The notes under the pieces: model-generated
What the model saw: only the letters and a program-made list of their open reading frames with translations
Databases searched by the model: none
What the model was told of the DNA's origin: nothing
Translations under genes and position numbers: made by a program
In this document: positions 4,163-52,097 of the stretch, piece after piece
Layout of the letters: each line of letters begins with the position of its first letter
Numbering within the stretch: position 1 is the stretch's first letter
NCBI GenBank assembly: GCA_044892525.1
Contig: CM097888.1
Location: forward strand, 63,178,001 to 63,242,000
Direction of reading: 5' to 3'
DNA length: 64,000 nt
Source: Schmidtea polychroa
Lineage: Eukaryota

Positions 4163-4294
4163 TAGAGAAACCGAATGTCGAATAATCTAGGTGTTTCTTA
4201 TAACTGAATTTTTGAATTAAATGCAAAATTAGTAATTTATTCGAGAAATTTTACATAATTAAAATCATTTTTTTTTAATTTTATCTGTATTTAG

Positions 4295-7200
4295 GGTGCA
4301 CTCCTGGTTACAAAGAAATGTTTACTGGTGATGATTATGAATCTTGGATGTTTCGCGGAGGTTTAATTACTGAATTTCAGGTATTTAAATTATTTTATAA
4401 TATTCACTAAAATATAAAAAGGATTTTGAAGGAGTGTGAAAATGAAAAAATCTTTATTTTTCTTTATGGAACTTCATAAAGGTCTAGGAGTATAACGCTG
4501 GGCATCGGAGTTTAGAAATTGAAAAGAAATTTGCTCGGTTTCGGCAATTTTTGCAATGATTAAAATAGCATTAAATAAAATAATGTCATAATGCATAGAT
4601 AATGTTAAATATTTTTCTGATTTTAAGTCATTTTACAGTTAAAATTTTGGCACGAATTTTGAAATGAGATAGTTTTTGCTACCTTGAACATATTTTACTT
4701 TACGCCTCAGAAATTGTTAATAATAAACAATTTGGTAGTTCGTTCAATCGTGGCTTCCAAAACCCAGTGATCTTTCCACAATATGGTTCTTCAAAATTTT
4801 GAATCTTTATTTGGATTGAATTTGGAATGAAATAATCATTATTAGTGTCGTTTAATTGCGGGAACAATTGCCGTTATAAAATTAAGTGTTAATGTTTGAT
4901 GTAATGACACATGCCTAGAACACTAAAAAATAACCAGAATATGTGAAGTCCGTCTTTTTGATTTGTTGGTAATTCTAGTGTTAAGAAACACTGCCTATAT
5001 TGCTGAAATTCATTTAATATTATTATTTTAACGATCAATTTATTCAATATTCAATGAATTAATTCATAAATTTCTATTTATTATGCTTTTTGCTTTAAAT
5101 GATGTATTTCGCCATTAGTTGGAATTCCACGTTACCATTTTATTGTTCATGTAACAAAACAATCGCAAACATTAAAGATAAAATGCGATATAACGAATGT
5201 AATTAAAATGATTCTTTTTCATTTATTTAGTAGTATAAAAGCTTTTTCATTTTTTATATTGCTAAAATTAATTAATTTCAAAACCGCAAGATTTTTGCTA
5301 AATGCACTAAAAATAGGAGAATAAGTTTTCAGTACTTGAAAAATTTTCATGCACTTGACTTAAGATATAAGCTTTGGCCTTAATTTTAGCCTTTAATTTT
5401 GTTACTATTTCTGTTATTGGAATAAAATTTATTTAAGTAATTGAAATGAAAATTAGGGAAATTACTAATGAGAATATAATTTGACAAATTACGTCTTGGA
5501 TTTATAAATAGTTTTTAATATCATATTGTATATTTTATCTGTAGATTGTTTCAATTTCTTTAAAATCGAAAATATTCATCAGTGTAACAAAGAATTCGTC
5601 CATAGTAAATTTCAGACTTTTTAAGGTTATTAGAAACAGAAGATATTAGTAGGTAAAGGAATGAATTCAAGCTTCCTATGCTTTTATTTTAAGTTTTACT
5701 GAAGAAAAATTTATTGTTTACCTTTGAGTAAATTTTAAAATAAAATCTGTTTTTATAAATGTTTGGTACATTTGACATATATTTGATGTTTTTTTATGTT
5801 AGTTTTGTGAAATTATTCTTGGGTGTAATATTTCACAAGAAATTACCCGATGAATTTGTTATTGCAACAGTTTTTTCTTATTCTTCTGAGACTGGTTGGG
5901 ATTTTCAGATGTTTCTTTATAACTTTCATAGAAACGCATATTTTATATTCATTTAGTAATAGATTCATAACCCACACTAGTATTTGTTATAGTTTATGAG
6001 GTTCTTCCATATCCGATTGCATTATTTACATGAATAACAATTGCTATTTTCCAATATTATCTTAAAATTACATCTTTTCGTATAAGTTTTTTCCACTTCT
6101 AACTTTTAACAATTCCTTTTAAAGGTTAAATCCTGCAAATATTTGATAATGTTTTCCCGTATTAATCAATACTTTTTAATATTTTTATACACGGTTCTAT
6201 ATTTCAGAGGATGTTTCCGGTTGATAACGCATATGATCTTTTTCCAATAAGAGCTTCATTCATTCAATATTCTCCTGATTTCACAGTCAACGGTTTATTG
6301 TCAGAACCTACAGATAGTGAAAAATCATCCTCGTCTATTTCACATAATGGTTGTCATCTCACAAAAATCTCTCGACCGATTTATTCAAAGCCTTCTATGT
6401 TTAATGTTCGTCCATTCAGAGATGAAGATCGTCCATCTATTTATTCCTTGTGCTTTACTCTTGTTAACAATCGAGCTACTCTGTCAGCTAACGATTATAA
6501 ATGTTATTCAGAAGATATTTTCAATCTCCCGGGAGATCGGTAAATGCTTGTTTTGTTTAATTATTGAAATATTTTTCTTTTTAGATATGTTGGAGTTTTT
6601 CTGGATAATTTTCCTGAATTTTGTCTTGTTTTAGAAAATGAGGATTCAGTAATAGTCGGATACGCTGTCGCTTGCATGAATGTATTGGAATTTCAGAAAT
6701 ATCGTAACCAGGAATATTTACCGAAAATGAGAAATAAATATTCTAAATATTTTATTAATAACTCCATCACAGACATTGAAATGACAGACTCAACATACTC
6801 AGGTGCCGTCAGATCGGCTATTCAGGTAAGATTTACACTTATCGTATATCTTTTTTGATAATTAAATTTGCATATTATGTATTTGGATTTATAAAGTGTC
6901 TAAATTACAATTAACAATGAAACACTTCAGCTAATTTCTATTCACGGTCATACTATTGGAATCGAAGTAATGAAGTTGTACCTTTGGGTTTGTGTGAACA
7001 GAAAAAAATTTTGGTGGCTGTTATTTTGCTAATAATATCATTTAAATCCTTTTTTATGATTTTATTCTATTTATTTCTTCTAAACTATAGCTCAATAACA
7101 TATGTTGTTTTCCATATTAATAGAAATAAATAATAATCCACCTTGTAAATAACCTTGTTCTTTATAAGCTTTTATTATAACCTCATATAGTGGTACTTCG

Positions 7201-15399: not shown

Positions 15400-15780
15400 T
15401 CATTTAATCCACCATGGATATCAGGACATCATGGACGTTTCCAACGCAGATTTATTGAAAGTTATCATCGTCGATAATAACTGGAACATGACTTATTTTT
15501 ATTAATAATTAAATAAATGTTTCTCGCAATAGTTATTCATCTTGGCCTATTCATTTCTTGTGGTATGGTTCATTTTCGACAATTGGGAGGTTCATCTTTC
15601 GCTGCTTTAGTGTACTTTAATTTCATAATTGTGTAAGATTTCAGTACTTTTCCATATCCAGCAGATTTTGTAAATTTTGATCACATATTACGTTTTTTTC
15701 TGTACAAAATCAGTTTTTACCCAAACACCAGTTTGAAATTTTCTGATGCTCATCGTTTTTTAATGAACCTTTTGCTTCTA
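15400..15780 (-). mobile_element. Possible heavily degraded Tc1-like transposase fragment
   Basis: Only weak translated resemblance (KLKYTKAAKDEP; VIIDDDNF), with many stops. Confidence 0.3.
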
Positions 15781-17540
15781 GTTCCATTAAAATATTTTAA
15801 TCTTGCAGTTTAATTTTGTTTACCTAATGATTATTGTAACATTTTCCTGTAACTTCTAAATTCCTATTTAATTTAGTTAGCATAATTTCAATAAAACCCC
15901 AACATTGGAATGGCCTCTTCCGCATTTGAATTGGTAATAAAACCACAACATAGATGTTGAAAATACGTAAACAAAAGCTAGTAGCAAGAATTGAGGAAAC
16001 CTTAAAATACATCCTAACCAAAACAAAGATCCTTACAAGCAATCCACAAATGATTACCATTTCGTGTGATATTAATATATCATTTATTAATAACATGCAA
16101 CTGAATATCGAAACTTCAAAAGGCAAAACCGAATAGAATGAAGTTAAAAGCATCATGTTCAGTCATAAAAGCAACATGCTATATTATACTATTATACACG
16201 AAAATGTTCAAATTTCAAAAACTTTTTAAGTAGTCGTCAGAGATAAGTCAAAAATTGAGTTACTCTAAATGAAACAAAACGGATCGAATAGACAATTGAA
16301 TATATATTTATCTATAGTGAACTTTACAAAGTCTAGCTATATCACTTATTATAAAAGTATTAATATAAAATACAAAATACATATTAACACAAATCAAGAA
16401 ACTCAAGGCATCATGTGAAATGTACAATGAGCAAAGACAATAATATACCAATAAACACTATCGAAATCAAGCCTTGCAGAGATTAATACTGTTTTGAACA
16501 AATGGTTCAATTTGTTTACAAAATAAACTAAATCCACAATTTGATAAATTGATAAGTGACCATAAATGTTCCTTATTGATATGTCTCAACATTTCAACAA
16601 TCGCTCACTTGTTATTTATCCACAAAATACTACAAAGAAAATCGATTAATTAGTGCTCATCTCAGAATCTAAAGATGAAGAGTCAGAACGTCCCGACGAG
16701 GACGAATCGGATGATGAAACGGATGAGAGAGCTGCTTGATGATGCGTTTGTTGTTCTAAAAGTTAATAAATTAGAATTCAAAAATATTTTGGAACTTTAT
16801 AAGGCAACCGACAGCGCTGCGAACGAATACGACAAAAATATATTACAAAACGTATTACAGAAATCAATTAGTAAATAATATAAATATTTACCATTGACTT
16901 TGGGATTTGAATTTTCAGAATTGATAATTGTAGTAGGAGCTATCAATACACTGTGGACATATTTCTCCAGTTTTCTCAGCGTCTTCGTTTGCAATAGTTC
17001 AAAATCAACTTCTATTTCATCGGGAGCGACATAACTAAATGACGGCTCGTTTTCTTGAATAATTTCCACGACTCTCCTTAACTTTGCACCAAATAATTGA
17101 CTGATATTTAATTGAAGTTGCCTTTTCTCTTCATAAATCATCGGCTCATAAATTTCTTCTTCTAACATCATGAGTTATAATTGTGAAGTAAAATGTAAGT
17201 TATGTTTTGATGAATGATTAAAGTAGTGTTTAAATTTAAATTTCAAAACTAATAAAATAATTTATTATTGTTTAAAGCAAACAAAAATATATTAAAAATA
17301 ATTTACATGAAAATGTTATTCAACTTTTAAAATGCTCATAAAAACATTTGAAAATAAAGTTTATATGTTCTAAATAGTTAGTAAAATTTAATGGGATTAG
17401 TATTATATTCGGACTGACACATTATTTTGGTTAAAATAGATTTTAAGATAACAATCTGACAATGCAGCTTATCAAACGGATTCAAAATTAGGTATACATC
17501 ATGGTTAAGATTTGTAATCATGAAAGTCTGCGTAATTTAA
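15781..17540 (-). repeat. Segmental duplicate of the BET gene 3' end (homologous to about 25786-27822)
   Basis: 15836-16626 is essentially identical to 25847-26637. The remainder is diverged, lacks about 225 bp of 3' flank and has a 90-bp in-frame exon deletion (27131-27220). Confidence 0.95.
16646..17171 (-). CDS. Putative stand-alone ET (extra-terminal) domain protein, 129 aa in two exons, or a pseudogene
   Basis: Exons are 17171-16892 and 16755-16646. ATG ATG start, phase-1 GT-AG intron and TAA are all retained. The product is [19 protein letters not shown]...[23 protein letters not shown] plus a Ser-rich tail. Expression is unknown. Confidence 0.55.
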
Positions 17541-24800: not shown

Positions 24801-25780
24801 ATTTTAGTTTTCCTTTTTCGAACCTTTGAAGGGGGATCCCAACTGTAGTTAGGTATTTTTTCTTATATACCATCAGGTAATTTGATAAAATGAAATACTT
24901 TAATAAAAATCCCTGTCTTCATTTTCAATAAAATCCTTATTATTTTATTTGTGACTACTTGGGAAAGTATATGTGAGTAGTATCACTATAAAATTTTCTG
25001 TCTAAAATGTACACGGCGAAGGTGCTTGAGGCTAGAGTTCCTCAGGGGGCTGCCTTGATAGGACTGGATCCAATTTCTGATCACCATATAGTGTCCAGCC
25101 ACCCAGCAGTCCATATTATTCGGCCAACCCAACCTTCGACCAAGTCCTCTGTGCAAGTAATTCCAGCAACATTGTTAAAATCGTCGGTTAAGGAACGAAA
25201 ACACCTCACCAAGGCCCGTTTCTTGCGTTAACAGAGGGAAAAACGCAGTGGATATATGAACCAACTATATTGATCGTGATTCCGGCTCCAACACTTTATC
25301 ATTTCTTCACTGCCAATTTGGATGATCTGGACTTTTATACACAGTCAGCTTCTCGAATCTAATTATTGTAGTTTAGTTTGGTGTCCAATTATCAATAAAT
25401 GTTTACTTTCTGTTTTTTCATTTGTTTCTACTACTTCAATTTAGTAGTTGAAAGTTGGGAGAAATGGAATTATAAAAATGCGTCGTTGGTAGAATACTAG
25501 AAATCAAGTTCTTCTCTCCACTTTTTCAGATGTTAGCTAAACTCGACTAAATCCTTTCGCCGATTCCGCCATCGGTCAGTAGTTTATGATATAATACCTT
25601 CTAACGGCATTGTTAATCGTTGATGAGTATATGGGTCGAGCAGTAGGATTAAGCCAGCTCGCCTTTGCTTTACCGCCTCTGTATACAGCACCAACGCGTC
25701 TCATTCAATCGACTTGCTTAAAGCAATTTTACCACCAGGATAGAATACTTGACCCCTAGCGAGGACATCATTTTTTTTTA
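21900..25780. mobile_element. Mixed degraded retroelement debris
   Basis: Scattered motifs include YLVDTSADV (protease-like, -, about 22450) and VPQGAALIG and PISDHHIV (non-LTR RT/APE-like, +, 25007-25231). There is no continuous ORF. Confidence 0.35.
23338..23379 (-). ncRNA. Minimal type I hammerhead ribozyme (Penelope-like-element type)
   Basis: The minus strand reads ATAGTA-CTGATGA-GAGC-CAAAA-GCTC-GAAA-CTAG-TC-TACTAT. It has an intact core, 6-bp stem I, 4-bp stem II, palindromic minimal stem III and a GUC cleavage triplet. Confidence 0.85.
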
Positions 25781-26881
25781 CTTCCAGTTCCCTTAAAATA
25801 TATTAATCTTGCAGCTTAACTTAATTTTGTTTACCTAATGATTATAGTAACATTTTCCTGTAACTTCTAAATTCCTATTTAATTTAGTTAGCATAATTTC
25901 AATAAAACCCCAACATTGGAATGGCCTCTTCCGCATTTGAATTGGTAATAAAACCACAACATAGATGTTGAAAATACGTAAACAAAAGCTAGTAGCAAGA
26001 ATTGAGGAAACCTTAAAATACATCCTAACCAAAACAAAGATCCTTACAAGCAATCCACAAATGATTACCATTTCGTGTGATATTAATATATCATTTATTA
26101 ATAACATGCAACTGAATATCGAAACTTCAAAAGGCAAAACCGAATAGAATGAAGTTAAAAGCATCATGTTCAGTCATAAAAGCAACATGCTATATTATAC
26201 TATTATACACGAAAATGTTCAAATTTCAAAAACTTTTTAAGTAGTCGTCAGAGATAAGTCAAAAATTGAGTTACTCTAAATGAAACAAAACGGATCGAAT
26301 AGACAATTGAATATATATTTATCTATAGTGAACTTTACAAAGTCTAGCTATATCACTTATTATAAAAGTATTAATATAAAATACAAAATACATATTAACA
26401 CAAATCAAGAAACTCAAGGCATCATGTGAAATGTACAATGAGCAAAGACAATAATATACCAATAAACACTATCGAAATCAAGCCTTGCAGAGATTAATAC
26501 TGTTTTGAACAAATGGTTCAATTTGTTTACAAAATAAACTAAATCCACAATTTGATAAATTGATAAGTGACCATAAATGTTCCTTATTGATATGTCTCAA
26601 CATTTCAACAATCGCTCACTTGTTATTTATCCACAAAGCACGATTTTTAAGAAATATATGGAAAATTAATTAATAATTTAATTCAAATTTATTACATATA
26701 AACTCATCAAATAATAGCTCAAAGTCAAAAAAGAGAAAATTTGCTTGAAACGAGTATATAATAACTTGCCAGTTACCATTATGCAAGTAATTGAAAAAAA
26801 TTCGGGAAATGAAATCAAAAATAAATATATTTCAATGTACATTATAATAAGAATTAGAAAAAATACTACAAATAAAATCGA

Positions 26882-30399: not shown

Positions 30400-33300
30400 A
30401 ATCAAAAACACGACAAAGGAGAAAAAATAAGATCAAAATTAAGAAACACAAAAATAAAGTAAAATAATGACAAAAGCATGAAGAATTGCACATAACCAAC
30501 ACTAATAAGAGGTTTGTGATCAGTGAAGACTGTGAATTGTCTAGCTTCTAAAATGTGTCCAAAAAGCTTAACAGCTAGAAAAATAGCAAGTAATTCTCTA
30601 TCGAATGCACTGTACTATGACTCTGCCAATGAAAATTTTCTAGAGAAAAATTCTATTGGGAGTGAAACATTGTCTTTAATTTGATTAAGGACTGCACCTT
30701 TGTTCAGTTCCGAAAGAGGTGCCGTTATGTGTGATGCGTTTTTATGAATCTGTGACAGAAATTGACGATGCCCAAAAACCTACGTAGTTGTGTTACGGTG
30801 GTGGGTAATGGGAAGTTGTGGATTACGTCAAGTCGTTCAGGAAAAGGTTTATAACCTGTAGATGAGAGTATGTGACCAAGGAATTTGACGCGTTTTTGAA
30901 AAAATTTAAATTTATTTACATTGATCTGTAAGTTATAACGGTTCCATATATCAAGAACAGAGTGTAGATCTTTGTTGTGGGTGTCGCGGTCGGGTGATGC
31001 TACAATTATATCGTCGAGGTATGCAAAAGCGTGGTGGACGTCCCGGAAAATTGTGTCCATGAAGTGTTGTAAAGACTGAGCTGCATTCCTTAGGCCGAAA
31101 GGCATGAACATGTATTCGAAATTTTTAAATGGTGTAATTACAGCGGTTTTGGGAACGTCATCGATATGTACAGGAAACTGATGGTAGGCTTTCGAGAGGT
31201 CAATAGTTGAAAATATGGTGGATTGTGAAAAGCGGGTTATTAAATCTTTGATAAGTGGCATAGGGTATGCTTGATTGAGTTTACGGTAGTCGTCGCACAG
31301 CCTGAGTGAACCGTCTTTCTTGGTGACTACGTGTATTGGTGACGCCCATGTAGATGAAGAACGGCGTATAATGCCTACAGTCTTTAGACTGGTGAATTCG
31401 GCTTTAACTGCGTCGATTTTAATGGGTCAGAGGGGTTTGGCTCGGTTGTGTTATGGTATGCAAATGTAGGAATATAATGAGTCGATAGAGTTGTCGGTTG
31501 TATGATAGGGGATTTTGTGATGAGTTTTGGGTATGTGGTTATGATTGTCTCGATTATGTCATGCATTGGCTCTGAAATAGGCGAATGTTGGATATCTGAC
31601 ATGTGTTTATTGCGTTCTATCGTGTCAGTAGATTGGATAAAGCTGAGTTAGGTCCTTGGAGATGTCTGTGTAGAGATTGCTGTTCTGTTTGGTGATACAT
31701 TTGTGGATATAGGATTGAGATGTCTGTTTATAGTGAATAGTCGTCGATTTTTGCCGTCTATCATGAGGGATTGTTCGCTGAGGAAATCGGAGCCTAGTAT
31801 TGGATGACTTCTGTCTGCTATGTGGAAATTGTGAGTGAAAATTGAGTCGGTAGCTTGAATGAAAGTTTTTACGTTCCAAAAAATTGTATCGGTGTGCCGT
31901 TGGCTGCCAATACGGTGAAAGAATATTTGAGATCTGAAGTTATATTGGTTAGGAGGATCGAAAATGATGATCTGGAGTCGACAAGGAAGTAAATTGATGA
32001 GCTGGAATTGAAAGTTGCTTCAACTGTAAAGATGATGTTGATCGCAAAAGCACCGCCTGAAAATCGAGGGTTTACAGACGGTGAAGTTAAATTTTTTTTG
32101 GGGGGGGTGTAATTGGAGTAGTTTTTGTTGTATTGTGGTTTGTTTGAGTAATGATTCACAAAGGTACAGCCTGGAAGCAATTCTGTGCATGTAACCCGAA
32201 GTGATTGTGCTTAATGCAGATGGGAATAACTCTTAAGGTTAACGGGGGGTTTAGCCAAGAACATCCTTATGTGACATGTTCTAGCGTCCGATTTAAACTT
32301 TTTGTGAAAAAAACAAGTCAGAGGTGGAAAAGAGTTTGACCTGTCAGTTCTTAGGGAGTATGGAATTTTTCGAGGGGGGTTAGTTAACGTGGCGACAGCT
32401 TTTGTCAAAGAGGATATCTGTTCTTGAAGCGAGAGGTTGGAGGCGGATGAGATAGATGTGGGTGTGTTACGAATAGGGGGTCTGGTGATCAGTTTATCAG
32501 CGATTTTTGCCAGGTGGAAGGAAGGAGGTTTGGACGTGATGTAGGATCGCTGTTAAAGAATAGTGACATAGGATAGCAGTGTTCATTGATAGGCTGGTAT
32601 GAGCGTTTTCTAGTTCTCGTACGAGTTGGGATAAAAATGATAATGGTGCCTGGCCACCGCATGGAGTGGTTTTGATAGTTTCTCAATTGATGAAGTGTTT
32701 GTGGGTGAGTATTTCTTATGTATCGCTATTTTGATGGACTCGTAAGGGTTTTCAGAGTCTAATTCGTCAGCAATTTGTGAAATTAATTCTGACATTAACA
32801 ATAGGTCTTGTTTAGATTTGGGGTTGGACTTTGTGCGCGCCTCAAAAATGCGGAACCAAGATGATGGGGTGCCGTTTGAGTCTAAAAATTTTAATTGGGT
32901 TCGACCGATGTTTGTTTTGAAAAAAACGTGAGACGATTGATTGTTTTGAGATTGAAAAATGGTTGATGATGGCCACTCCGTTGTTTAAGGTGAAAACTCG
33001 TTTTCGTCTATTAAAAATGTTTCGATAGGTCTTTCACAAAATTTTGGGTTACACGGACTTAGAAAAAGATGGTAGTGTGAGGGACAGTAATGTTGGGCGT
33101 TTTCATATTAGTTAAAGTTGCGTTTTTGGGCTTGGGAGATTGGTGGAAAAAGAAAAATATATCAACATAATAATTGGACATTTTTAATACATTATATATA
33201 AATTTAATGAAGGAAAATGTATTAATAAGGACAATTATAAATGTAATTTTTACTGTTTTTAAAGATAGAAGAACATTTGCCTTTGTCACTTCTGACACCA

Positions 33301-33500: not shown

Positions 33501-33993
33501 TTTGAATTTGATGATTTTTTAAATTCAATTTGATGATGATTTTCGAAAAAGTGAAAAGTAAAGGATTATTTAAACAATTGTTATTATTTTTTTATTTTTT
33601 ATTAATTTAATAATATATTTTTAGTTCAATTATTAAATTGAAAAAAGTGCTAGTCAGAGGCACTGTGTCACAATATAATGACCTTATATAATAAATAAAT
33701 TTAATATAACAATCAAAGAAATGAATTTAGTAAGCCAAGTAAAATGGATGAATTTAGGTTAATAATGAGCAAAGTAAACTAAGTGAATTGGGGGTATGAT
33801 GGGCAAATTATGGTGATTACCGAATTTATATGATCGTACGAATAATGATAGCCCTAATAGTAATAAGGATTCAATACTGAATCTCAATACCTGAGCTTAA
33901 ATACCTCAACCACGCACTATTGTGATTTAGAACCAAGAAATCTGGAAAACGTACCAACATTGATCACTCGATGGGTATCAAGCAGCGAAATAG

Positions 33994-36900
33994 ACATTTT
34001 ATTCTGGGTTACACTAGAAACAACATGACAGAGTAAAATGTTTGATTACTTGTAACACACAACTACATTACAGTCTAAACTTATTTTATTGACAAATGTG
34101 AATCATATGAAATTTAATGATTTTGTCTACAAGACGAGTATAAACTTACAAACAAAAATTAAAGAATTCCAATGTTAAATATTTTTTCATTTTACTAAAT
34201 ACTTCTCTAGGAAATTATACAGACTACTTGAGGTCCCGGCTTGGTGATTCGGTAACAGTCCACTTAAAGTACATTGCAGTCTACACATACTTTATTGAAA
34301 AATGTGAATCATATGAAATTTAATGATTGTGTCTACAAGATCCGTGCCCTAAGGTTGCAAATCAGAAACTTGGAGATGCAACTACATCAGAGGGATTTAG
34401 ATCACGATGCAGCCGGTGGAGGTGAAAATCGGAAAATCAACCAACCCACTCGATCAGCGGGTCGAACCAAAATGAAGCGGCCTAGTCGATTTGCGCGAAA
34501 CCGATTAAAGGCGCTCCAACTGGCATCTCAGGCACCTAGTGAGGCATATTGCCACCTAGATGCTACGAAATACACGGGGTTTCGAGACGAATAGCCAATC
34601 CAATAGCACCAATCAATTAACGGAATGTCCTATATTTTTACATTAATTAGTATTAGATCAAATAAAGTAGTGTGCTTAGTTTTTCATTTTAAATACTTCA
34701 TGTTGTCCTTTATTTTACACTGGGTCATGAAGACCAGGATCACCTGACTCGTGAATGGTGCGAATTGCTGCGTGAGTAGAAACCGTGTGAAAGTATGGGG
34801 AAGGTTGCGAGACATATGGAGTACATTTTATTCTTGGTTGCGCTAGAAACAGCATGACAGAGTAAAATGTTTGATTACTTGTAACACACAACTACATTAC
34901 AGTCTACACTTATTTTATTGACAAATGTGAATCATATGAAATTTAATGATTTTGTCTACAAGACGAGTATAAACTTACAAACAAAAATTAAAGAATTCCA
35001 ATGTTAAATATTTTTTCATTTTACTAAATACTTCTCTAGGAAATTATACAGACTACTTGAGGTCCCGGCTTGGTGATTCGGTAACAGTCCACTTAAAGTA
35101 CATTGCAGTCTACACATACTTTATTGAAAAATGTGAATCATATGAAATTTAATGATTGTGTCTACAAGATCCGTGCCCTAAGGTTGCAAATCAGAAACTT
35201 GGAGATGCAACTACATCAGAGGGATTTAGATCACGATGCAGCCGGTGGAGGTGAAAATCGGAAAATCAACCAACCCACTCGATCAGCGGGTCGAACCAAA
35301 ATGAAGCGGCCTAGTCGATTTGCGCGAAACCGATTAAAGGCGCTCCAACTGGCATCTCAGGCACCTAGTGAGGCATATTGCCACCTAGATGCTACGAAAT
35401 ACACGGGGTTTCGAGACGAATAGCCAATCCAATAGCACCAATCAATTAACGGAATGTCCTATATTTTTACATTAATTAGTATTAGATCAAATAAAGTAGT
35501 GTGCTTAGTTTTTCATTTTAAATACTTCATGTTGTCCTTTATTTTACACTGGGTCATGAAGACCAGGATCACCTGACTCGTGAATGGTGCGAATTACTGC
35601 GTGAGTAGAAACCGTGTGAAAGTATGGGGAAGGTTGCGAGACATATGGAGTACATTTTATTCTTGGTTGCGCTAGAAACAGCATGACAGAGTAAAATGTT
35701 TGATTACTTGTAACACACAACTACATTACAGTCTACACTTATTTTATTGACAAATGTGAATCATATGAAATTTAATGATTTTGTCTACAAGACGAGTATA
35801 AACTTACAAACAAAAATTAAAGAATTCCAATGTTAAATATTTTTTCATTTTACTAAATACTTCTCTAGGAAATTATACAGACTACTTGAGGTCCCGGCTT
35901 GGTGATTCGGTAACAGTCCACTTAAAGTACATTGCAGTCTACACATACTTTATTGAAAAATGTGAATCATATGAAATTTAATGATTGTGTCTACAAGATC
36001 CGTGCCCTAAGGTTGCAAATCAGAAACTTGGAGATGCAACTACATCAGAGGGATTTAGATCACGATGCAGCCGGTGGAGGTGAAAATCGGAAAATCAACC
36101 AACCCACTCGATCAGCGGGTCGAACCAAAATGAAGCGGCCTAGTCGATTTGCGCGAAACCGATTAAAGGCGCTCCAACTGGCATCTCAGGCACCTAGTGA
36201 GGCATATTGCCACCTAGATGCTACGAAATACACGGGGTTTCGAGACGAATAGCCAATCCAATAGCACCAATCAATTAACGGAATGTCCTATATTTTTACA
36301 TTAATTAGTATTAGATCAAATAAAGTAGTGTGCTTAGTTTTTCATTTTAAATACTTCATGTTGTCCTTTATTTTACACTGGGTCATGAAGACCAGGATCA
36401 CCTGACTCGTGAATGGTGCGAATTGCTGCGTGAGTAGAAACCGTGTGAAAGTATGGGGAAGGTTGCGAGACATATGGAGTACATTTTATTCTTGGTTGCG
36501 CTAGAAACAGCATGACAGAGTAAAATGTTTGATTACTTGTAACACACAACTACATTACAGTCTACACTTATTTTATTGACAAATGTGAATCATATGAAAT
36601 TTAATGATTTTGTCTACAAGACGAGTATAAACTTACAAACAAAAATTAAAGAATTCCAATGTTAAATATTTTTTCATTTTACTAAATACTTCTCTAGGAA
36701 ATTATACAGACTACTTGAGGTCCCGGCTTGGTGATTCGGTAACAGTCCACTTAAAGTACATTGCAGTCTACACATACTTTATTGAAAAATGTGAATCATA
36801 TGAAATTTAATGATTGTGTCTACAAGATCCGTGCCCTAAGGTTGCAAATCAGAAACTTGGAGATGCAACTACATCAGAGGGATTTAGATCACGATGCAGC

Positions 36901-38366
36901 CGGTGGAGGTGAAAATCGGAAAATCAACCAACCCACTCGATCAGCGGGTCGAACCAAAATGAAGCGGCCTAGTCGATTTGCGCGAAACCGATTAAAGGCG
37001 CTCCAACTGGCATCTCAGGCACCTAGTGAGGCATATTGCCACCTAGATGCTACGAAATACACGGGGTTTCGAGACGAATAGCCAATCCAATAGCACCAAT
37101 CAATTAACGGAATGTCCTATATTTTTACATTAATTAGTATTAGATCAAATAAAGTAGTGTGCTTAGTTTTTCATTTTAAATACTTCATGTTGTCCTTTAT
37201 TTTACACTGGGTCATGAAGACCAGGATCACCTGACTCGTGAATGGTGCGAATTACTGCGTGAGTAGAAACCGTGTGAAAGTATGGGGAAGGTTGCGAGAC
37301 ATATGGAGTACATTTTATTCTTGGTTGCGCTAGAAACAGCATGACAGAGTAAAATGTTTGATTACTTGTAACACACAACTACATTACAGTCTACACTTAT
37401 TTTATTGACAAATGTGAATCATATGAAATTTAATGATTTTGTCTACAAGACGAGTATAAACTTACAAACAAAAATTAAAGAATTCCAATGTTAAATATTT
37501 TTTCATTTTACTAAATACTTCTCTAGGAAATTATACAGACTACTTGAGGTCCCGGCTTGGTGATTCGGTAACAGTCCACTTAAAGTACATTGCAGTCTAC
37601 ACATACTTTATTGAAAAATGTGAATCATATGAAATTTAATGATTGTGTCTACAAGATCCGTGCCCTAAGGTTGCAAATCAGAAACTTGGAGATGCAACTA
37701 CATCAGAGGGATTTAGATCACGATGCAGCCGGTGGAGGTGAAAATCGGAAAATCAACCAACCCACTCGATCAGCGGGTCGAACCAAAATGAAGCGGCCTA
37801 GTCGATTTGCGCGAAACCGATTAAAGGCGCTCCAACTGGCATCTCAGGCACCTAGTGAGGCATATTGCCACCTAGATGCTACGAAATACACGGGGTTTCG
37901 AGACGAATAGCCAATCCAATAGCACCAATCAATTAACGGAATGTCCTATATTTTTACATTAATTAGTATTAGATCAAATAAAGTAGTGTGCTTAGTTTTT
38001 CATTTTAAATACTTCATGTTGTCCTTTATTTTACACTGGGTCATGAAGACCAGGATCACCTGACTCGTGAATGGTGCGAATTACTGCGTGAGTAGAAACC
38101 GTGTGAAAGTATGGGGAAGGTTGCGAGACATATGGAGTACATTTTATTCTTGGTTGCGCTAGAAACAGCATGACAGAGTAAAATGTTTGATTACTTGTAA
38201 CACACAACTACATTACAGTCTACACTTATTTTATTGACAAATGTGAATCATATGAAATTTAATGATTTTGTCTACAAGACGAGTATAAACTTACAAACAA
38301 AAATTAAAGAATTCCAATGTTAAATATTTTTTCATTTTACTAAATACTTCTCTAGGAAATTATACA
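33994..38366 (+). repeat. Tandem array of 829-bp units (about 5.3 copies, nearly identical)
   Basis: Identical ORFs recur at 34274, 35103, 35932, 36761 and 37590 (period 829). The only variable site I saw among full units is gaatt[g/a]ctg. Confidence 0.98.
34721..35423 (+). CDS. Putative three-exon coding segment within one 829-bp unit (unknown coiled-coil/basic protein); repeats with the array
   Basis: Exon A ends at 34771 (GTGAGT), exon B is 35040-35080 and exon C is 35169-35423 (TAG). Phases are compatible and AATAAA lies about 65 nt after the stop. I found no in-frame ATG or acceptor for exon A. Confidence 0.5.
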
Positions 38367-38788
38367 TTTTCAAAATTTCTCAGTATTTCCATACATTTTT
38401 TTGCAAAATTTTATAGTTTACCAACAGTTGAATGATGGCTTTAATATTGTCTATATTCAAACGATTTCTAACTTTCACTTTATTTTCATCACGGAGAACA
38501 TTATCCCAACAGTAGTATTATAAAGTGATGAATTAGCTCATTTCTGAAAACCAAGCAAAGTATCGAATGTCCTTACCAAGAAAGGAGGGACATCAACTCT
38601 ATAGATGACCTCTTTAAGTAATACAAGTAAAAGCACTTCATATAACTAAACCAAAAAATAGTAAAATTCAAAACCAATATAATTTCCGTCAAGAATCAAA
38701 CTACATTTTATTAAAAACACTTATAAATAAATCCAAACATTTGGCTCAATTTAACAGATCTATTACTACTACAATATTAATAACTCTC

Positions 38789-42167
<3,379 letters not shown>

Positions 42168-44227
42168 TTTTTAAATTAATTTTTGAATTAATTTGATATT
42201 AGTTAATTATTTAAACAACTTCAACTAATTTTAAGTTAATTTTATTTCCGAAATCAATAATAAAAATAATATTTTTTGAAGAAAAAATTTTCGAAGTACC
42301 CAATTAAAATATTATATAATTTTAATAAACTTTAACTATAAAAATATTAATATATTAATGTACATTCCTACTTGTACTACTCGACTCAGGATATTCAATT
42401 AACTGAGAAAATCCAATCAACGTTAGTACTGTATCACAAGTGAATTGCGGTCAGCAGAAGATGTGTTTCGCTTGTGAAATTGGAAATGTTCTGAAGTGGA
42501 CTACCATTTGAAGGATATGTTGGTTGGTCGTTATATAGTTTTGTTTTGATATCTTAATGTTGAGGTAAGGAAGGGGTTGTTACTAAGAATAGATTAACTA
42601 TGTTTAAATTTCAACTAATTAGCGCGACAGATTCAAAGAACCATGGAAATCAGATTCACTAAATACTCACCAAAGTTTGCGACCCGAAATTTATTCTGAA
42701 GGAAAAAGTAAAATTGATTTGATTTTTATGTTTTATTAGCGTTTGCAATCATCAGTCTTTGATAACTATTGAATAAAATTTTTATAATGAGTTGTATTAA
42801 GTTTTAATATTCGATAGCTTAAGTAGTAATGGAATTATAATTCCTTTCGACCCTTTTTATACAAGTCAAAGTTTTAGATTTCTCTCCTTAGTGAAGTTAT
42901 GAATATGTCTGCGATGCAATGATTATCATCTTTGAAAAGTATGCAAGATTTATTTCAGTGAAAATTCTTTCCTAATAAAGTAGGAATAGTTCGACGACGC
43001 GATTCTGCTCAATTGGTAAAGTATTCTAGAAATTTTTGTTTCAATGAAGTTATTACCGTATGAAATTCACAAGTTAAATGTGAATTTAAAGTTCGACTGT
43101 TCTCATATGGCGAGAGTTATTGAAATTTTCGGACTCGATTGCTTTCATTCGATCAAAGGTTGAATTTAGCAGTAGTTTTCTTTTCTCTTTAAATTCATTA
43201 TATACATATAGATTGTTGGAGGGTCTTGACCCAGTAATCTGGACAAGGTGGGAACCTGGAACCCGACCTGGGTTCAGTCAGAGGCCTATCCGAATGAAAG
43301 TCTGCTATCCCGGACAAAGGGAATTATCGATGTTGAGCTCTCTGTGAGTTGTATACACCGGGTGGAACATCAGATCCGACCCGGAGAGCTAGAAGATCCT
43401 GATAAGGTGGCTCTCTGTTCAACTCCGATCGGATAGTAGCTATCTGCAGGAACCTGGAGCGAGCTTCGGAAGTCTCAAGCTTGACCCAGACGCCTCAACT
43501 GATCAATCACAGAAAACGAAACGGCCCCGGAAGATCGCCCGAGGAAACTGAGGTCGATCCATCACCATTGAAAATTCTGACTATCAATTTGCATTGACCA
43601 TTTAGGGTTTTTTGAATAAAGCGACGTGTTATTAGGTATATGATTTTCATCGAGTTTAGTATTGGTATAATAGCCTATTGAGTTTTCTGTACTGTCCGAG
43701 ATTCATGTAATTCTGAGAACTTTTCTTTTAAGAATTCAGTAATATTATAACTACTTATATTCTTATTATTGGGCTACAAAAATTTGAAGGGAAAGATGCA
43801 TGTAATCTAGTGGTAGATAACTTATAACTTAACTTTTTTGAACATTTGTCGACTAGTTCACATACACTTTACACATTAGTAATAAACGCAATGAATTTCT
43901 CAGTTTGTTTAACTAGGAAACTGAGGCTTTATGCGATGTTCTCATTAACAAAACCTTTTAAAATGTTTTCTGCAAAATTTGATTTTGACATTGTACATTA
44001 ATTTTAAATATACTGTTTTATTTATACTAATACTGGTTATAATTCTGATTGGTTAATATAGTTAAATGTAAAACATAAGAGATATGATTCGATTCAATTA
44101 TTTATTATATATAGTAGACTTTCGAATGATATAAAACTTGTATGTGTGAGTAAAACCGTCCCTTATTTATTGCTCCTTATCAATGATGTCATATACAGAC
44201 ACACATAGATTATCAGCCCAAATTAAA

Positions 44228-44742: not shown

Positions 44743-45209
44743 CGTGTGCTCACTTCTACCATCTACTTGCAAAATTAAAATCATTTAGAATCTCAGTCCA
44801 ATATAATGAACTTTGTGGAATGTGAGTTTGCAAGTCTTAAAAACAGTATTCACCCTTATTAAGATTTTAAGGTTTGTTTCATAGAACCAATATCTCAAAA
44901 CTGGTTCATTGCCTCATAAATCACTTCGAGGAATGCGTAATTAAGCGGCCCATCAATTTGTTTTTTTCTCTCGATTCCTAAGTTAAGAGGTAATCAACAC
45001 CATCAAAATTAAGATAACATTATCATATTAAGTATAATGTACATCAAATTGCAAACAAGTTGTTAATCATAACGTGAAGTTTAAAACAGATTTAAAAAAC
45101 GCCAATCATGTCGGTGAATTGAAAGTAAGTTTGTGGTGATGCTATTTTTAATCATTTTTAAAACGCTATCTTAAATGATTCGAATGATTCCGACGAATAT
45201 ACATATAAT

Positions 45210-48200
45210 TAATATACTATATAATTAAATATCCCGTTGTTTTAATATTATAAATTTTTCTCCCATGTACATCCATTTTCCAATATCTCTCGCAGCTCTC
45301 GAAACCGAATGTCCTTTTGTCGTTGTTCCCATACTTTTCCCATAGCTTCTGTTCTTTGGATAGTAGATATATATCTATTCTTTGATTTTCCTTCCTTAGC
45401 TTCTTCATGTCTTGTTTGACACTGAATGCAAATATTACTTTTTTATCTTGATAGTCCATCTGCATTCGAGTGTCCTGCGCCTTTCCCATATTTTTGTTTA
45501 AAATCATATTCCGACAGGTTAGCTAACCATGTTTGGAACTGCGGACTGATTGACGTTGTTGTAGTGTTCATGAAAACGAATGCTTTGTGGTCAGGTGAAT
45601 TATGAATTTTTTTCCGTACAGATATTCTCTAAAATGCATGACGTATTCATGTACGACGAGCAGTTCTTTCATGGTTACACAGTATCCCTTTTCATGTGAT
45701 GACATATGTCTCAAGCCATAAGCTATGACAGATTCTTCTCCATCTTCTGTAATTTGACTCAAAACTGCACCAATGGCTCCTAAACTAGCGTCTGTATCTA
45801 AGATAAAAATCCTATCTTCTCTTCGAAAATCAAGGATTGGTGCTTCGCACAACCGTCTCTTCAGAGTTTGGAAGCTCTCATTGCATTCTTTAGTCTAATT
45901 TATATCTTTATCGCATCCTGATGTTGCAGCGTATAATGGTTCGGCGATTTTGGCATAGTCCTTGATGCATATTCTATAGTAGTTCGTTAATCCGAGAAAC
46001 GATCTCAATTGTTTTGAACATTTTTGTACTTCTGCTTTCTTGATCTCTTCCACTTTCTTCCTGTTTGTCTGGATACCCTCCTCGTTAACTGTGTAACTAA
46101 GGAAACACAATTCTGTTTAATTAAATATGCATTTTCTGTATTTATCTTCAGTCCTGCCATTTGAATTCTTCTGAATATTTCCCTTAATAGCTCATCGTAT
46201 TCTTTTTGACTTTTACCATATACCAAGATATCATTTAGATAAACTACTACTCCCTTGAATAGAATTCCTTCTAGCACTGTGTGAATCAGTCTCTGGAATG
46301 TCCCAGGAGCTGTTGCTAAGCAAAACGGTAGTGTATTGAAGCAAAATTGTCCTTCTCTTGTACTGAATGCAGTCATTTCTTGAATTTCTGAAGCCAACTT
46401 CACTTGATAATACGCCTGACCTAAATCGATTGACAGTCTAGATAATAGACAGTCTAGATTAATTTGTAATAATTTAGTAATCTAGTAATAATAATCTAGT
46501 AATAATTTGGTGTTAGGTTTCGGAAATGACTCTTTTTCTGTTATGGAATTCAATCCACGATAATCTACACACATCCTGATAGATTCATCTTTCTTCCCTA
46601 CTATCACTAACGGGGCATTCCAAGGACTCTTGCAACACCGAATAACATTTGCTTTCATTAACTCTTTTATCAGTTCTTCAATTCTTTTCTCCATGTGCAT
46701 TGGTTGACGTCGAGGATGTTGCATTATTGGGCCTCCTGTTATCCGCATCTCATGTCGAACTAAGTTTGTAAATCACATATCGAATTTCGTTGCCGTAAAA
46801 ATTCCGCCGTATTCCCTGATCATTCCTTCAATATATTTACTATTCTCACCTGCCATCGCCACTAGTGCTTTATTTATTCCTTTTTCATCAGTGTAAATTT
46901 TGTTTATCAATGACGTTTCTATATTATTGATTTTCACTAACTTTACTTCAAACTCTTTCATAGTATCAATGCCCCCTATGAATTCGGGCTGGATCTCTTT
47001 TACCACTACTACTGTGATTATTTTGATCTTCTGATTCCATGTGGCCGGTATAGTCATGTATCCCATTGCTTCTTCACCTCCAGTTGAAAAGACTCCGCAT
47101 AATAATATCGTACTACGTTGAAGTACTGGTTTGCCTATTTTCTCCCATAAATTCTTGCTCATGACTGTTACTGATGATCAAGAGTCCCATAACATCTCTA
47201 TTTCGGCATTATTCAACATTATTTTACTCCAATTTCTTCCATCTTCCGTCTGGTACATCTCTTCTTCTGCCTCGTCTCTTCGCCTTCATTTTTTATATTG
47301 TCTTGATTCTACCGACGAAATAAAACCCATGGAGTCGCTGATGTTTTATCCGTCTTCTCTCAATATAGTATATTTCTCAGGGACATTCTATCTATCTTCC
47401 ATGTCCTGTGAGCAGCTCTGAAATCCTGGCTGTTTTCGGTGTAATCTCTTTTTTCAGATTTTGAATCTTCTTCTTCTAGGCACGCTATTCTTCGATGTCG
47501 GTGTGGAACCTCTTTCCATAAAGAAAAACAATCTCGGAACCCGTGTCCTTCCTTGCCACATATCAGGGATTTGTTTCCCAGTTGACACTCATACCTTCTG
47601 TCCCCTTTCGCCACAGCAAAAACAACCACCTGCCGTTAATTTTGGGACCGATGCTTGCGGTAGTCCTCTACTTTTGTTGTACAGCCTCCTTGCTATATTC
47701 TTCATGGATATTGTTGGCAGCTTCCTTTCTGAGCTATTCGGGATTTTCGTATTTCTCAAGAATTGTTCTATTGGAAATTGTTCTCGAGGACCATTGTTAT
47801 TTCCTTCGTATTGTATTGGTCCGCGTTTAGGATGTTCGTCTCTTCTTGATCTGTGGTGACTAAATGACTCTTCTGATAGTCTTCTTTGTGATGATGTAGG
47901 CATAGGATCTTGGGTATTCTTTTGAATTCTCATCTGCCCTCCCTCAGTCACGTTAGCGTATGTTCTTTGACCGATTGCTTTAATAAATTCCGTTTTATTG
48001 TTTTCATTTTTGTTACTTTCAAAAATTTTCGCCAATGATCTCATTTCTTCAATTTTTGTTTCTAATTTCGTCAATAGTATCTCCCTCAGTCTTGCATCGC
48101 GTGTTTTATTTGCAATGAGGTCTTGAACAATATCTTCTTCTGATCGTCCTGAATTTACAACTTCAGCTAAAGCTTTCCTTAGTCGTATCTCAAAAGCTGC

Positions 48201-50372: not shown

Positions 50373-52097
50373 NNNNNNNNNNNNNNNNNNNNNNNNNNNN
50401 NNNNNNNNNNNNNNNNNNNNNNNNNNNNNNNNNNNNNNNNNNNNNNNNNNNNNNNNNNNNNNNNNNNNNNNNNNNNNNNNNNNNNNNNNNNNNNNNNNNN
50501 NNNNNNNNNNNNNNNNNNNNNNNNNNNNNNNNNNNNNNNNNNNNNNNNNNNNNNNNNNNNNNNNNNNNNNNNNNNNNNNNNNNNNNNNNNNNNNNNNNNA
50601 AAATGATAATTTAAGCCTTTTGCTGCAAATAATGTATTTAATGAAAAATTTTCGACTATNNNNNNNNNNNNNNNNNNNNNNNNNNNNNNNNNNNNNNNNN
50701 NNNNNNNNNNNNNNNNNNNNNNNNNNNNNNNNNNNNNNNNNNNNNNNNNNNNNNNNNNNNNNNNNNNNNNNNNNNNNNNNNNNNNNNNNNNNNNNNNNNN
50801 NNNNNNNNNNNNNNNNNNNNNNNNNNNNNNNNNNNNNNNNNNNNNNNNNNNNNNNNNNNNNNNNNNNNNNNNNNNNNNNNNNNNNNNNNNNNNNNNNNNT
50901 AATAATTATAATAAAATTCTAACCGAAATTCTATTTTTTATTTGAATTTCATTATTTATGCTAATATTTGTTTGTTGTTATAATTTTAGAATTTTTTTTT
51001 CATTGACTGAAAGGAAAACTCAGTTATCTTTTTACAATTAAATTGCTAAATAAACATTTAATAAATTAATAAATCCTGCGAAAAGCAAATGCTGATGATT
51101 GTTTATCAAAAACAAAAATTTTTCATTGATATGAGCGATTTGCTGGAAGGTTGTGAGATGTTAATCATGATGAATATCTAGGTCTGTCAAAACATTTAAT
51201 TACGGAAGAAAATATTGAAAAAGTGCGTGAATTTGTGAATATATCTAAAAAAAAATTCTTCGGTAAGATTTATGGAAATGGAATTACAAATATCGAAAAC
51301 AATAATTCATCACATTTTAACATAACAAGTCAATTCGAAGTTCGTTCATTACCAGATAACAAATGATTAAACATTTTATTGAATTGAACATTGTAAAACC
51401 ATGCAAAAAATGATCCAAATTTCCCGAAATTGATTGTAACTGGTGATGAGACATGGCGTTTCCAATACAATCCAGAAACAAAGCGTCTAAGTGCTAAATA
51501 AAAATGACCAGATGAAGGATAACCGATAAAAGTCGTCTCATAATATACAATTATATCATATTGAGTTATATACAAAGAATTCGTTATAGATGGCTCAACG
51601 GTTATTTCTAAGTATTACCTTGACGTTTTGAAACATTAATTTGCCCATATTCATTGTATTCAACCAGGTAGTTAAAGTCCTATATATGACAACGCGTCAG
51701 CTCATTTCATATCAATTTTTACTGAAGAAAATCAAATTTTTTTGCTACACATTCTCAATATTTACCGGATATGATTTTGTATGATTATTTTCTTTTCCCA
51801 ATACCTTCTCATTTTACAGTGAAAGAAGAAGCCGAAAGTGCAATAATTGCCAACATTATTNNNNNNNNNNNNNNNNNNNNNNNNNNNNNNNNNNNNNNNN
51901 NNNNNNNNNNNNNNNNNNNNNNNNNNNNNNNNNNNNNNNNNNNNNNNNNNNNNNNNNNNNNNNNNNNNNNNNNNNNNNNNNNNNNNNNNNNNNNNNNNNN
52001 NNNNNNNNNNNNNNNNNNNNNNNNNNNNNNNNNNNNNNNNNNNNNNNNNNNNNNNNNNNNNNNNNNNNNNNNNNNNNNNNNNNNNNNNNNNNNNNNN
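50373..52097. other. Assembly gaps (50373-50599, 50660-50900, 51861-52097)
   Basis: Runs of N. Confidence 1.
51130..51760 (+). mobile_element. Degenerate mariner transposase
   Basis: IVTGDETWRFQYNPETKR and DNASAH correspond to mariner catalytic-domain motifs. Confidence 0.8.

Follow-up and report, generated by a model that had tools for sequence, protein, structure and literature searches.

A gene-like tandem array next to MCM5 in Schmidtea polychroa is very probably a young local duplication of a retroelement fragment

The array and its surroundings

The window analyzed here is a stretch of 64,000 nucleotides of Schmidtea polychroa DNA (assembly GCA_044892525.1, contig CM097888.1, positions 63,178,001 to 63,242,000), and all coordinates without a chromosome name refer to it. 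It contains a head-to-tail tandem array on the plus strand (33994-38366) with an exact period of 829 bp, a spacing which is seen five times. The array comprises 5.27 units, corresponding to five full units and 228 bp, and the units are 99.8-100% identical. This confirms the first-pass annotation, which was made from the sequence alone and described about 5.3 near-identical units of this length. When read in the phase of the duplication, the array starts with an incomplete piece of 228 bp at its left edge (33994-34221), after which the duplicated segment is present in five full copies (34222-38366). It was missed by TRF because the longest period of 500 lies below the period of 829 bp. Independent support for the tandem arrangement is provided by DNA run X3, in which an 859-nt contig loops back after 829 bp.

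Seven positions vary across the units; five of these fall in the 85 bp with which the leftmost unit begins. One is the TTG/TTA difference at unit position 774, which had been reported as the single variable site and as synonymous in the frame of a proposed terminal exon (“exon C”, see below). The site is real, synonymous and the sole informative one for this frame within the array, but it is not the single variable position. In a genome search the full 829-bp unit was found only in the array and once in an inverted duplicate. The array is thus a local duplication and not satellite DNA proper, which is characterized by long arrays or many loci.

The inverted duplicate is part of an inverted 5,350-bp duplication, the arms of which are 99.9% identical. 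The arm in the window (37534-42881) holds the last array unit, the right flank of the array and the MCM5 gene (38685-41940, minus strand; Pfam domains MCM, MCM_OB and MCM5_C), which is oriented tail-to-tail with the array at a distance of approximately 320 bp. The other arm (G000:C4:63272442-63277791) lies 56 kb away, beyond the window, and its junction was seen in DNA run X3. It harbors a single-unit copy, L006, with different DNA to the left of the sequence GACTAC and with the right flank of the array after the sequence ATACA. In the array these two sequences are joined (ATACA|GACTAC) at 35050/35051 and also at 34221/2, 35879/80, 36708/9 and 37537/8. The four base pairs TACA are common to the end of the segment and to the DNA preceding the segment in the single-copy version. 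At unit position 708, the array has T, while the other arm has C.

The repeat unit and its parent retroelement

Two thirds of the unit (~555 bp) correspond to a truncated and internally deleted piece of the 3’ end of a retroelement LTR, and ~274 bp are DNA in which this piece is embedded. Dispersed copies match the unit over positions 345-829, with a DNA identity of 66-71% for positions 345-822, and over positions 1-70, where the identity to dozens of loci is about 85%. All features of the unit described below are given for the plus strand. The 3’ terminal 70 bp of the LTR (34823-34892, repeated at +829 steps) end at the natural terminus of the element, which is of the type ...GTAAC(A/C)CAC(A/C)A. 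Directly 3’ of this terminus, a 71-bp direct repeat named R1a is located (34893-34963; further copies start at 34064, 35722, 36551, 37380 and 38209). It is identical at 66 of 71 positions to R1b (35099-35169), which lies directly 5’ of the truncated LTR fragment. The fragment carries the C-terminal half of an ORF and, 3’ of it, further LTR sequence (35424-35651) with a conserved AATAAA (~35490), up to the junction of a 173-bp deletion internal to the LTR (~35651/35652).

At the left edge of the array, the 3’ terminal 111 bp of the LTR are present as a further copy (33953-34063, plus strand), which shows 73-86% identity to LTR tails at more than 20 loci. The first 41 bp of this copy precede the array and have no counterpart in any other unit, and four of the five edge-specific substitutions are found in this piece.

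The 71-bp direct repeats around the LTR fragment differ from the 4-bp target duplication expected of LTR integration. The idea that R1a and R1b had arisen as a long target-site duplication around a retroposed copy no longer fitted after the parent had been recognized as an LTR. A search for a second, degenerate LTR tail upstream of R1b gave no significant similarity (p = 0.45).

The dispersed element behind the ~555-bp piece has at least 3,700-4,400 candidate matches in the genome, and its copies have a sharp common 3’ end and unrelated flanks. In a copy which was fully read (C4:73.16-73.20 Mb), the common 3’ end is the end of an LTR of roughly 5.4-5.65 kb. Here the paired LTRs are 30.9 kb apart and have TG...CA ends with a short inverted terminal repeat; the target duplication of 4 bp reads CGTA, a PBS-like motif follows the 5’ LTR at a distance of 6 nt, and internal ORFs on the strand of the element encode ankyrin, TRAF-MATH and BIR+RING domains. 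The 10-kb locus L039, for which no ORF could be listed, probably lies within the giant ORF of this copy. Judged by the LTR structure of this copy and by the ankyrin, TRAF-MATH and BIR domains, the parent is probably a Burro-like giant Gypsy retroelement; the closest relatives of the array (L016/L017 type, 1.26 kb) are candidates for such LTRs. The array-encoded protein is 36% identical to the corresponding ORF product (ORFb) of L034, the first-listed copy, and the latter is 92% identical to ORFb of the fully read element.

Burro/GYPSM1 elements are giant Gypsy-like LTR retrotransposons of planarians with ankyrin, MATH/TRAF and BIR motifs (Grohme et al. 2018, reviewed in PMC6431247). The parent family resembles them in that it makes up the LTR 3’ ends of elements with ~25 kb of internal DNA and more than 30 kb in total, and in the internal ankyrin, MATH/TRAF and BIR motifs. 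In contrast, the LTR part of the array is limited to a fragment of 555 bp, which belongs to a divergent subfamily, as indicated by the 66-71% DNA identity to the nearest copies.

Inside the LTRs of the giant retroelement, an AT-hook ORF is located upstream of the coiled-coil ORF (basic tail) to which ORFb corresponds. The LTR-borne ORF family is abundant, with at least 3,767 candidate matches distributed over all chromosomes, and lineage-restricted, with five matches among 1.84 billion proteins. No description of the LTR-borne ORF was found in the available part of the Burro/GYPSM1 account in PMC6431247.

The proposed exons

It had been suggested that each unit hides a spliced protein-coding module of three exons, “exon A” (34726-34771), “exon B” (35040-35080) and “exon C” (35169-35423; 84 codons and a stop codon), all on the plus strand and repeated at 829-bp steps. 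The GT/AG signals, the matching phases, the stop codon and, ~66 nt past it, the AATAAA are indeed all present, the latter being the conserved signal of the retroelement. However, the splice layout as a whole does not exceed chance. When canonical GT..AG paths extending the terminal ORF upstream were counted, 167 two-intron paths were found in the real unit and a mean of 148 in 300 shuffled sequences, one third of which contained at least as many paths as the real unit. The “splice sites” and the matching phases are very probably what AT-rich DNA yields by chance.

The three blocks differ in their origin. “Exon C” can be aligned over its full length with ORFb from nine dispersed copies and represents the C-terminal half of this LTR-borne coiled-coil ORF of 145-173 aa. 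“Exon A” (in the following unit at 35555-35600, within the LTR sequence 3’ of the ORF) is located downstream of the poly(A) signal of the element, and its frame is interrupted in related copies by a 10-bp indel and stop codons. Since L006 shows the unduplicated arrangement, the duplication junction at 35050/35051 can be placed inside “exon B”. This block is therefore chimeric: it combines the end of the duplicated segment with its beginning, did not predate the duplication and cannot be an inherited exon. Most of “intron 2” is R1b.

“Exon C” was searched as protein. With 15 aa and 13 aa, respectively, exons A and B are below the length required by protein tools, and for these two the search with the DNA of the whole unit was used. 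Pfam contained no family for “exon C” or for the longer unspliced frame, and the 145-aa relative gave only sub-threshold coiled-coil noise. A protein atlas search returned only generic coiled-coil look-alikes, and in Rfam there was no meaningful match for the array or for a full parent copy. A match to a transposable element, which had been named in advance as an outcome deciding against a spliced gene, was found.

Transcripts, constraint and alternative explanations

Two RNA runs, X1 and X2, were inspected. MCM5 is correctly spliced in both (six CT..AC joints) and served as a positive control. Among the contigs of these runs there was no spliced form joining exons A, B and C, and no contig lay on “exon A” or “intron 1”. 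The contigs over the unit (37533-37908 and 37629-37922, with 11 and 8 mismatches, respectively) are unspliced and cover “exon B” (from 37533), “intron 2” and “exon C”. They read through “intron 2”, and their upstream continuation is other DNA and not “exon A”. These data are assembled contigs of two small runs, probably from another strain, and rare isoforms get dropped in such assemblies; a low level of splicing or of expression from the array may be compatible with them.

No contig in X1 or X2 carried the array’s own letters. The transcribed source is a copy with 3% divergence in which the frame is still open, as found in two runs from two studies; 11 positions distinguish it. The 30 nt preceding the unit in the RNA contig had no match in the assembly at up to 3 mismatches. 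The source is absent from the assembly or diverged in it, probably as a result of a strain difference. Comparison of “exon C” with the transcribed copy revealed seven differences, all of which are non-synonymous. The divergence of 2.7% in “exon C” is no lower than the 3.3% in the 123 bp upstream.

We also considered whether the locus could be an unspliced, retroelement-derived young gene. Its expression would start from the array units or from the single copy on the other arm, and it would use the LTR poly(A) signal. An ATG-initiated frame of 93 codons, which starts in R1b and continues through “exon C” (e.g. 35142-35423), is indeed open in all five units and in L006, each followed by the poly(A) signal, and the diverged copy is transcribed across exactly this stretch. 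However, the exclusively non-synonymous changes and the equal divergence inside and outside the frame give no sign of constraint, and the peptide would be only the C-terminal half of the parent ORF product. Moreover, transcription of the related copy begins 372 nt or more upstream, which would place the ORF deep in a longer RNA, and no contig has the letters of the array. Altogether, we regard such a gene as very unlikely.

A functional non-coding role, for example as a source of small RNAs directed against the retroelement or as a boundary or termination element downstream of MCM5, would be in line with the retroelement sequence, the tail-to-tail orientation to MCM5 and the transcription of a related copy. 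The array, however, measures only 4.4 kb, lies on one strand, has no counterpart in Rfam, and nothing sets it apart from neutral duplication, which makes this role highly improbable.

Trans-splicing occurs in planarians, and together with the canonical GT/AG signals, the compatible phases, the stop codon and the AATAAA it could speak for the proposed amplified micro-gene (A-B-C), trans-spliced or translated from a non-AUG start and kept uniform by concerted evolution. This idea is scarcely tenable in view of the junction inside “exon B”, the position of “exon A” past the poly(A) signal and its disrupted frame in relatives, the unspliced RNA contigs, the splice paths in shuffled sequences and the seven non-synonymous substitutions in “exon C”.

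An assembly artefact, in which tandem copies or the inverted duplicate were wrongly collapsed or expanded, can practically be dismissed: near-identical units and inverted arms are hard to assemble, and samples disagree in the ratio of contig depth to that of the flank (3.0 in X3, 1.8 in X5), but the DNA contig closes on itself, the right boundary and the other arm’s junction are present on separate contigs, and the ratio of 3.0 equals that of the copies in the assembly (6:2), although contig depth cannot be taken as a copy number. The ratio in X5 may reflect copy-number polymorphism.

Origin of the array and known parallels

Based on the above, the array is very probably a young, locus-specific tandem duplication derived from a retroelement and without demonstrated function. 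Its unit combines the LTR 3’ end, comprising the C-terminal half of the ORF, the AATAAA and the tail with the internal deletion, with embedding DNA that includes the flanking 71-bp repeats. The inverted duplication, the 173-bp deletion and the tandem duplication may have occurred in this order. The first tandem duplication could have arisen by microhomology-mediated template switch or by unequal exchange, and unequal crossing-over would then have increased the copy number to five. The recent date of the event accounts for the near-identity of the units, and older differences are kept at the left edge only; concerted evolution under selection, as originally invoked, is not needed. The gene-like look results from the coding appearance inherited from the retroelement ORF. 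The other explanation offered by the first-pass annotation, a tandemly amplified 3’ gene fragment, was nearly right: it is a 3’ fragment, not of a host gene but of an LTR-borne retroelement ORF plus its flank.

Tandem duplication of retroelement fragments is a known kind of event and an ordinary origin of young satellite-like repeats. Tandem repeats derived from centromeric retrotransposons were described (PMC3648361), and satellite-like arrays of LTR fragments were reviewed (PMC9659126). As in those arrays, the unit comes from a part of the LTR or untranslated region, the copies are head-to-tail and highly uniform, and the ORF of the element persists as a remnant, no longer as an intact gene. 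On the other hand, the array is no satellite of chromosome scale, since only five units are present at one locus plus one unit in the inverted duplicate, and nothing points to a centromeric location. A further difference is that one third of the 829-bp unit is flanking DNA not belonging to the element; the duplication therefore took place at the level of the genome and did not result from replication of the element.

The main value of these observations is a correction: an apparent spliced and amplified orphan gene is an LTR fragment duplicated with its flank, and the region should therefore be masked as a repeat and not annotated as a gene. In addition, the locus provides a small, dated example of a satellite-like array starting from a retroelement fragment via a microhomology junction, with the unduplicated state kept in the other arm.

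It is tempting to speculate that the LTR-borne coiled-coil ORF and the AT-hook ORF upstream of it constitute a real, undescribed accessory gene, which is partially domesticated here in that the single-unit copy, the array or both express the 93-aa C-terminal fragment from the LTR poly(A) signal. We consider this a long shot. If it were true, the fragment could perhaps interfere with the coiled-coil assembly of the parent protein. The LTR-borne ORF family may merit a study of its own.

Structure of the 829-bp tandem array

A repeat search of the window revealed six in-register copies with an exact spacing of 829 bp from position 33994, the final copy being partial. The array (33994-38366) corresponds to 5.27 units, and its self-identity according to self-BLAST is 99.7-99.8% over up to 3,544 bp. 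TRF did not report the array in the window, since the period of 829 exceeds the longest period of 500 in TRF. The array is real, because an 859-nt contig assembled from the public DNA run X3 runs back into itself after 829 bp and further X3 contigs carry the right boundary. Thus, the approximately 5.3 near-identical units noticed in the first-pass annotation were confirmed. The unit to flank ratio of contig depth, which is not a copy number, was 3.0 in X3 (corresponding to the 6:2 copies of the assembly) and 1.8 in X5, another sequenced sample. This difference hints at copy-number variation.

Column-by-column comparison, including the copy outside the window, revealed seven variable positions, five of them in the leftmost unit, within its first 85 bp, and one private to the outside copy. 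The TTG/TTA site, previously considered the single variable one, is real (units 1 and 3 carry G at unit position 774, the others A), but it is not the only one.

The unit contains the 3' end of a retroelement LTR

Using one unit as query against the genome assembly (781 Mb, approximately 30% G+C, four large chromosomes), we found the full unit in the array and in one extra unit on the same chromosome, in the opposite orientation. Three loci match unit positions 345-822 with 66-72% identity (the third only over 345-489), and positions 1-72 match dozens of loci with approximately 85% identity. In the two best loci, the block 35169-35423, proposed earlier as the last of three exons ('exon C'), corresponds to the C-terminal half of an uninterrupted coiled-coil ORF of 145 aa, and at the protein level 'exon C' aligns with this ORF family from first residue to last. 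Homology to these loci is unbroken beyond the ORF, through the stop codon and AATAAA into the proposed 'exon A' (34726-34771). The dispersed copies stop abruptly at a common 3' end, ...GTAACCCACCA, beyond which the DNA is unrelated, and unit positions 1-70 are the terminal stretch of this element. The ORF homology together with the shared 3' end shows that the dispersed element contributes approximately 555 bp to each unit, from the middle of the ORF to the element's last base, with approximately 173 bp deleted when compared to the nearest copy. The closest relatives of the array are elements of 1.26 kb that share this tail. Unit positions 71-344 (approximately 274 bp) are non-element DNA. The element fragment is bracketed by direct repeats of 71 bp, R1b (35099-35169) on its 5' side and R1a (34893-34963, with a further copy at 35722) on its 3' side, which are identical at 66 of 71 positions. 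As a separate observation, unit positions 121-225 (34114-34218, in the proposed 'intron 1') have one match of 79% identity at C1:18515275-18515374.

Candidate matches to the coiled-coil ORF (ORFb) number at least 3,767 and are spread over every chromosome and both strands, many with open frames of 160-173 codons. Identical copies occur in same-strand pairs, mostly approximately 30.8 kb apart. At C4:73.16-73.20 Mb, the paired repeats of approximately 5.4-5.65 kb start with TGTTGGG and finish with CCCACCA, and thus have TG...CA ends and a short inverted terminal repeat. The element is flanked by a 4-bp duplication (CGTA), a motif resembling a primer-binding site lies 6 nt past the upstream repeat, and internal ORFs on the same strand encode ankyrin, TRAF-zinc-finger/MATH and BIR+RING domains. 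The same unusual motifs are published for Burro/GYPSM1, giant Gypsy-like elements of the planarian Schmidtea mediterranea with an internal region of up to 25 kb and a length of more than 30 kb including LTRs (PMC6431247). We therefore consider C4:73167778-73204300, with LTRs more than 98% alike, a Burro-like element. Based on the paired repeats, the target duplication, the motif resembling a primer-binding site and the Burro-type domains, the dispersed element is the LTR 3' end of Burro-like retroelements and their relatives, the LTR structure being read in this pair. The further same-strand pairs, most of them 30.8 kb apart, suggest many such copies. Taken with the base composition and the four chromosomes, the Burro-like LTRs would fit a planarian genome.

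ORFb is located just upstream of a conserved AATAAA, and in some subfamilies another ORF, which has an AT-hook-like motif, precedes it. In three LTRs (L034:4040-5490 and L040:4034-5484, plus strand; L036:4279-5749, minus strand), the last 1.5 kb contains both open frames, the first of 123 aa with the AT-hook-like motif RKRGRPRK and the second, coiled-coil, of 164-170 aa, separated by an AT-rich gap of 270 bp. This two-frame region is present in thousands of copies, with the frames open in many. We infer that ORFb is a U3-borne accessory ORF. Its family profile gave only five matches among 1.84 billion proteins, none of them in a named family. Two are predicted proteins from other sources that end in an ORFb-like domain, P0003 (416 aa), with a calponin-homology domain ahead of it, and P0004 (297 aa); they represent a host gene that has this domain, or else the annotation joined a gene to a piece of retroelement. 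This LTR-borne ORF family is a more interesting by-product than the array itself.

Origin of the array by local duplication

The region 37534-42881 corresponds in inverted orientation to C4:63277791-63272442 (99.9% identity over 5,350 bp), with approximately 51.6 kb between the arms. The inverted duplicate takes in the entire downstream flank of the array together with MCM5, a gene identified by the Pfam domains MCM, MCM_OB and MCM5_C. Each arm probably contains the whole of MCM5, and at the least most of it; if whole in both, the assembly harbours two near-identical MCM5 copies in opposite orientations.

The far arm carries the single-unit copy L006, in which other DNA ending in CTTACA is followed by GACTACTTGAGG..., R1b, the LTR fragment, R1a, ...GGAAATTATACA and the right flank known from the window. 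Thus, L006 contains the duplicated segment once, without a head-to-tail junction. In the window, the segment end ...ATACA is followed by GACTAC five times, and the right flank follows the last copy only. This comparison places the head-to-tail junctions at 34221/2, 35050/1, 35879/80, 36708/9 and 37537/8, with TACA as shared microhomology. The X|GACTAC contiguity is of long standing and does not mark a recent break, since an RNA contig of a 3%-diverged copy has the related sequence ...AACTTATTCATACA immediately before GACTAC. At the left edge, the first 228 bp of the array together with the preceding 41 bp consist of slightly diverged LTR tail, R1a and following DNA; they lack the 173-bp deletion and are an older copy.

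The array is thus a local tandem duplication derived from a retroelement LTR, a known kind of event. The order of steps that we propose would start with an LTR fragment downstream of MCM5. An inverted duplication with one breakpoint inside the LTR tail may have been followed by the 173-bp deletion, then by a TACA-mediated template switch or unequal exchange, and the array could have expanded by unequal crossing-over.

Coding potential and transcription

The first-pass annotation had suggested an amplified spliced micro-gene, with a tandemly amplified 3' gene fragment as the alternative. Its three blocks, their GT/AG borders and phases and the stop codon were all found, with AATAAA approximately 66 nt past the stop. 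However, when all canonical GT..AG paths extending the terminal ORF were counted (introns of 40-400 nt, minimum exon length 30 nt), the real unit gave 167 two-intron paths; 300 shuffles averaged 148, and 33% of them reached the real count. The joined phases are no more than AT-rich DNA is expected to yield by chance. 'Exon A' lies downstream of the poly(A) signal of the element, and related copies have a 10-bp indel and stops in its frame. 'Exon B' (35040-35080) spans the junction 35050/1, absent from the single-segment L006, and is a chimera made by the duplication. Pfam and Rfam searches gave no matching family; the sequence searches covered 'exon C' on its own and the two short exons through the DNA search with the whole unit.

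The RNA runs X1 and X2 stem from two different studies, and their contigs skip six MCM5 introns (CT..AC ends); as assembled contigs of small runs they report presence only, levels, ends and rare isoforms being beyond their reach. A 748-nt X1 contig covers 37533-37908 continuously through 'intron 2' with 11 mismatches, its first 372 nt lying outside the unit, elsewhere, and a 294-nt X2 contig covers 37629-37922 with the same variant letters. Thus, the same runs that splice MCM5 gave only unspliced contigs on the unit. No X1 or X2 contig covers the 3' region of the unit, 'exon A' or 'intron 1', and none matches the array letter for letter. Since the 30 nt preceding the unit in the X1 contig have no match in the assembly at up to three mismatches, these RNAs probably come from the counterpart of the other arm in another strain.

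Variation within the array is effectively nil for constraint testing. Between the transcribed copy and the array, divergence is 2.7% in 'exon C' and 3.3% in the 123 bp upstream, and all seven 'exon C' differences change an amino acid; with no clearly lower divergence, this argues against the coding model. In each unit, an ATG-initiated frame of 93 codons (e.g. 35142-35423) has stayed open and a poly(A) signal is retained, and there is transcription of a related copy. For these reasons a young expressed ORF in each unit is conceivable, as is a non-coding role of the array, both being unsupported readings.

Neighbourhood of the array

The array is located in retroelement-rich intergenic DNA between a bromodomain (BET) gene and MCM5. 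Decayed reverse-transcriptase or pol fragments of other LTR retroelements are present on the minus strand at 30725-32180 and 45200-47200, and three runs of N of 227-240 bp each at 50373-50599, 50660-50899 and 51861-52097. Adjoining the BET gene (minus strand), we found an 862-bp direct duplication (15770-16626 and 25776-26637) with 98.8% identity.
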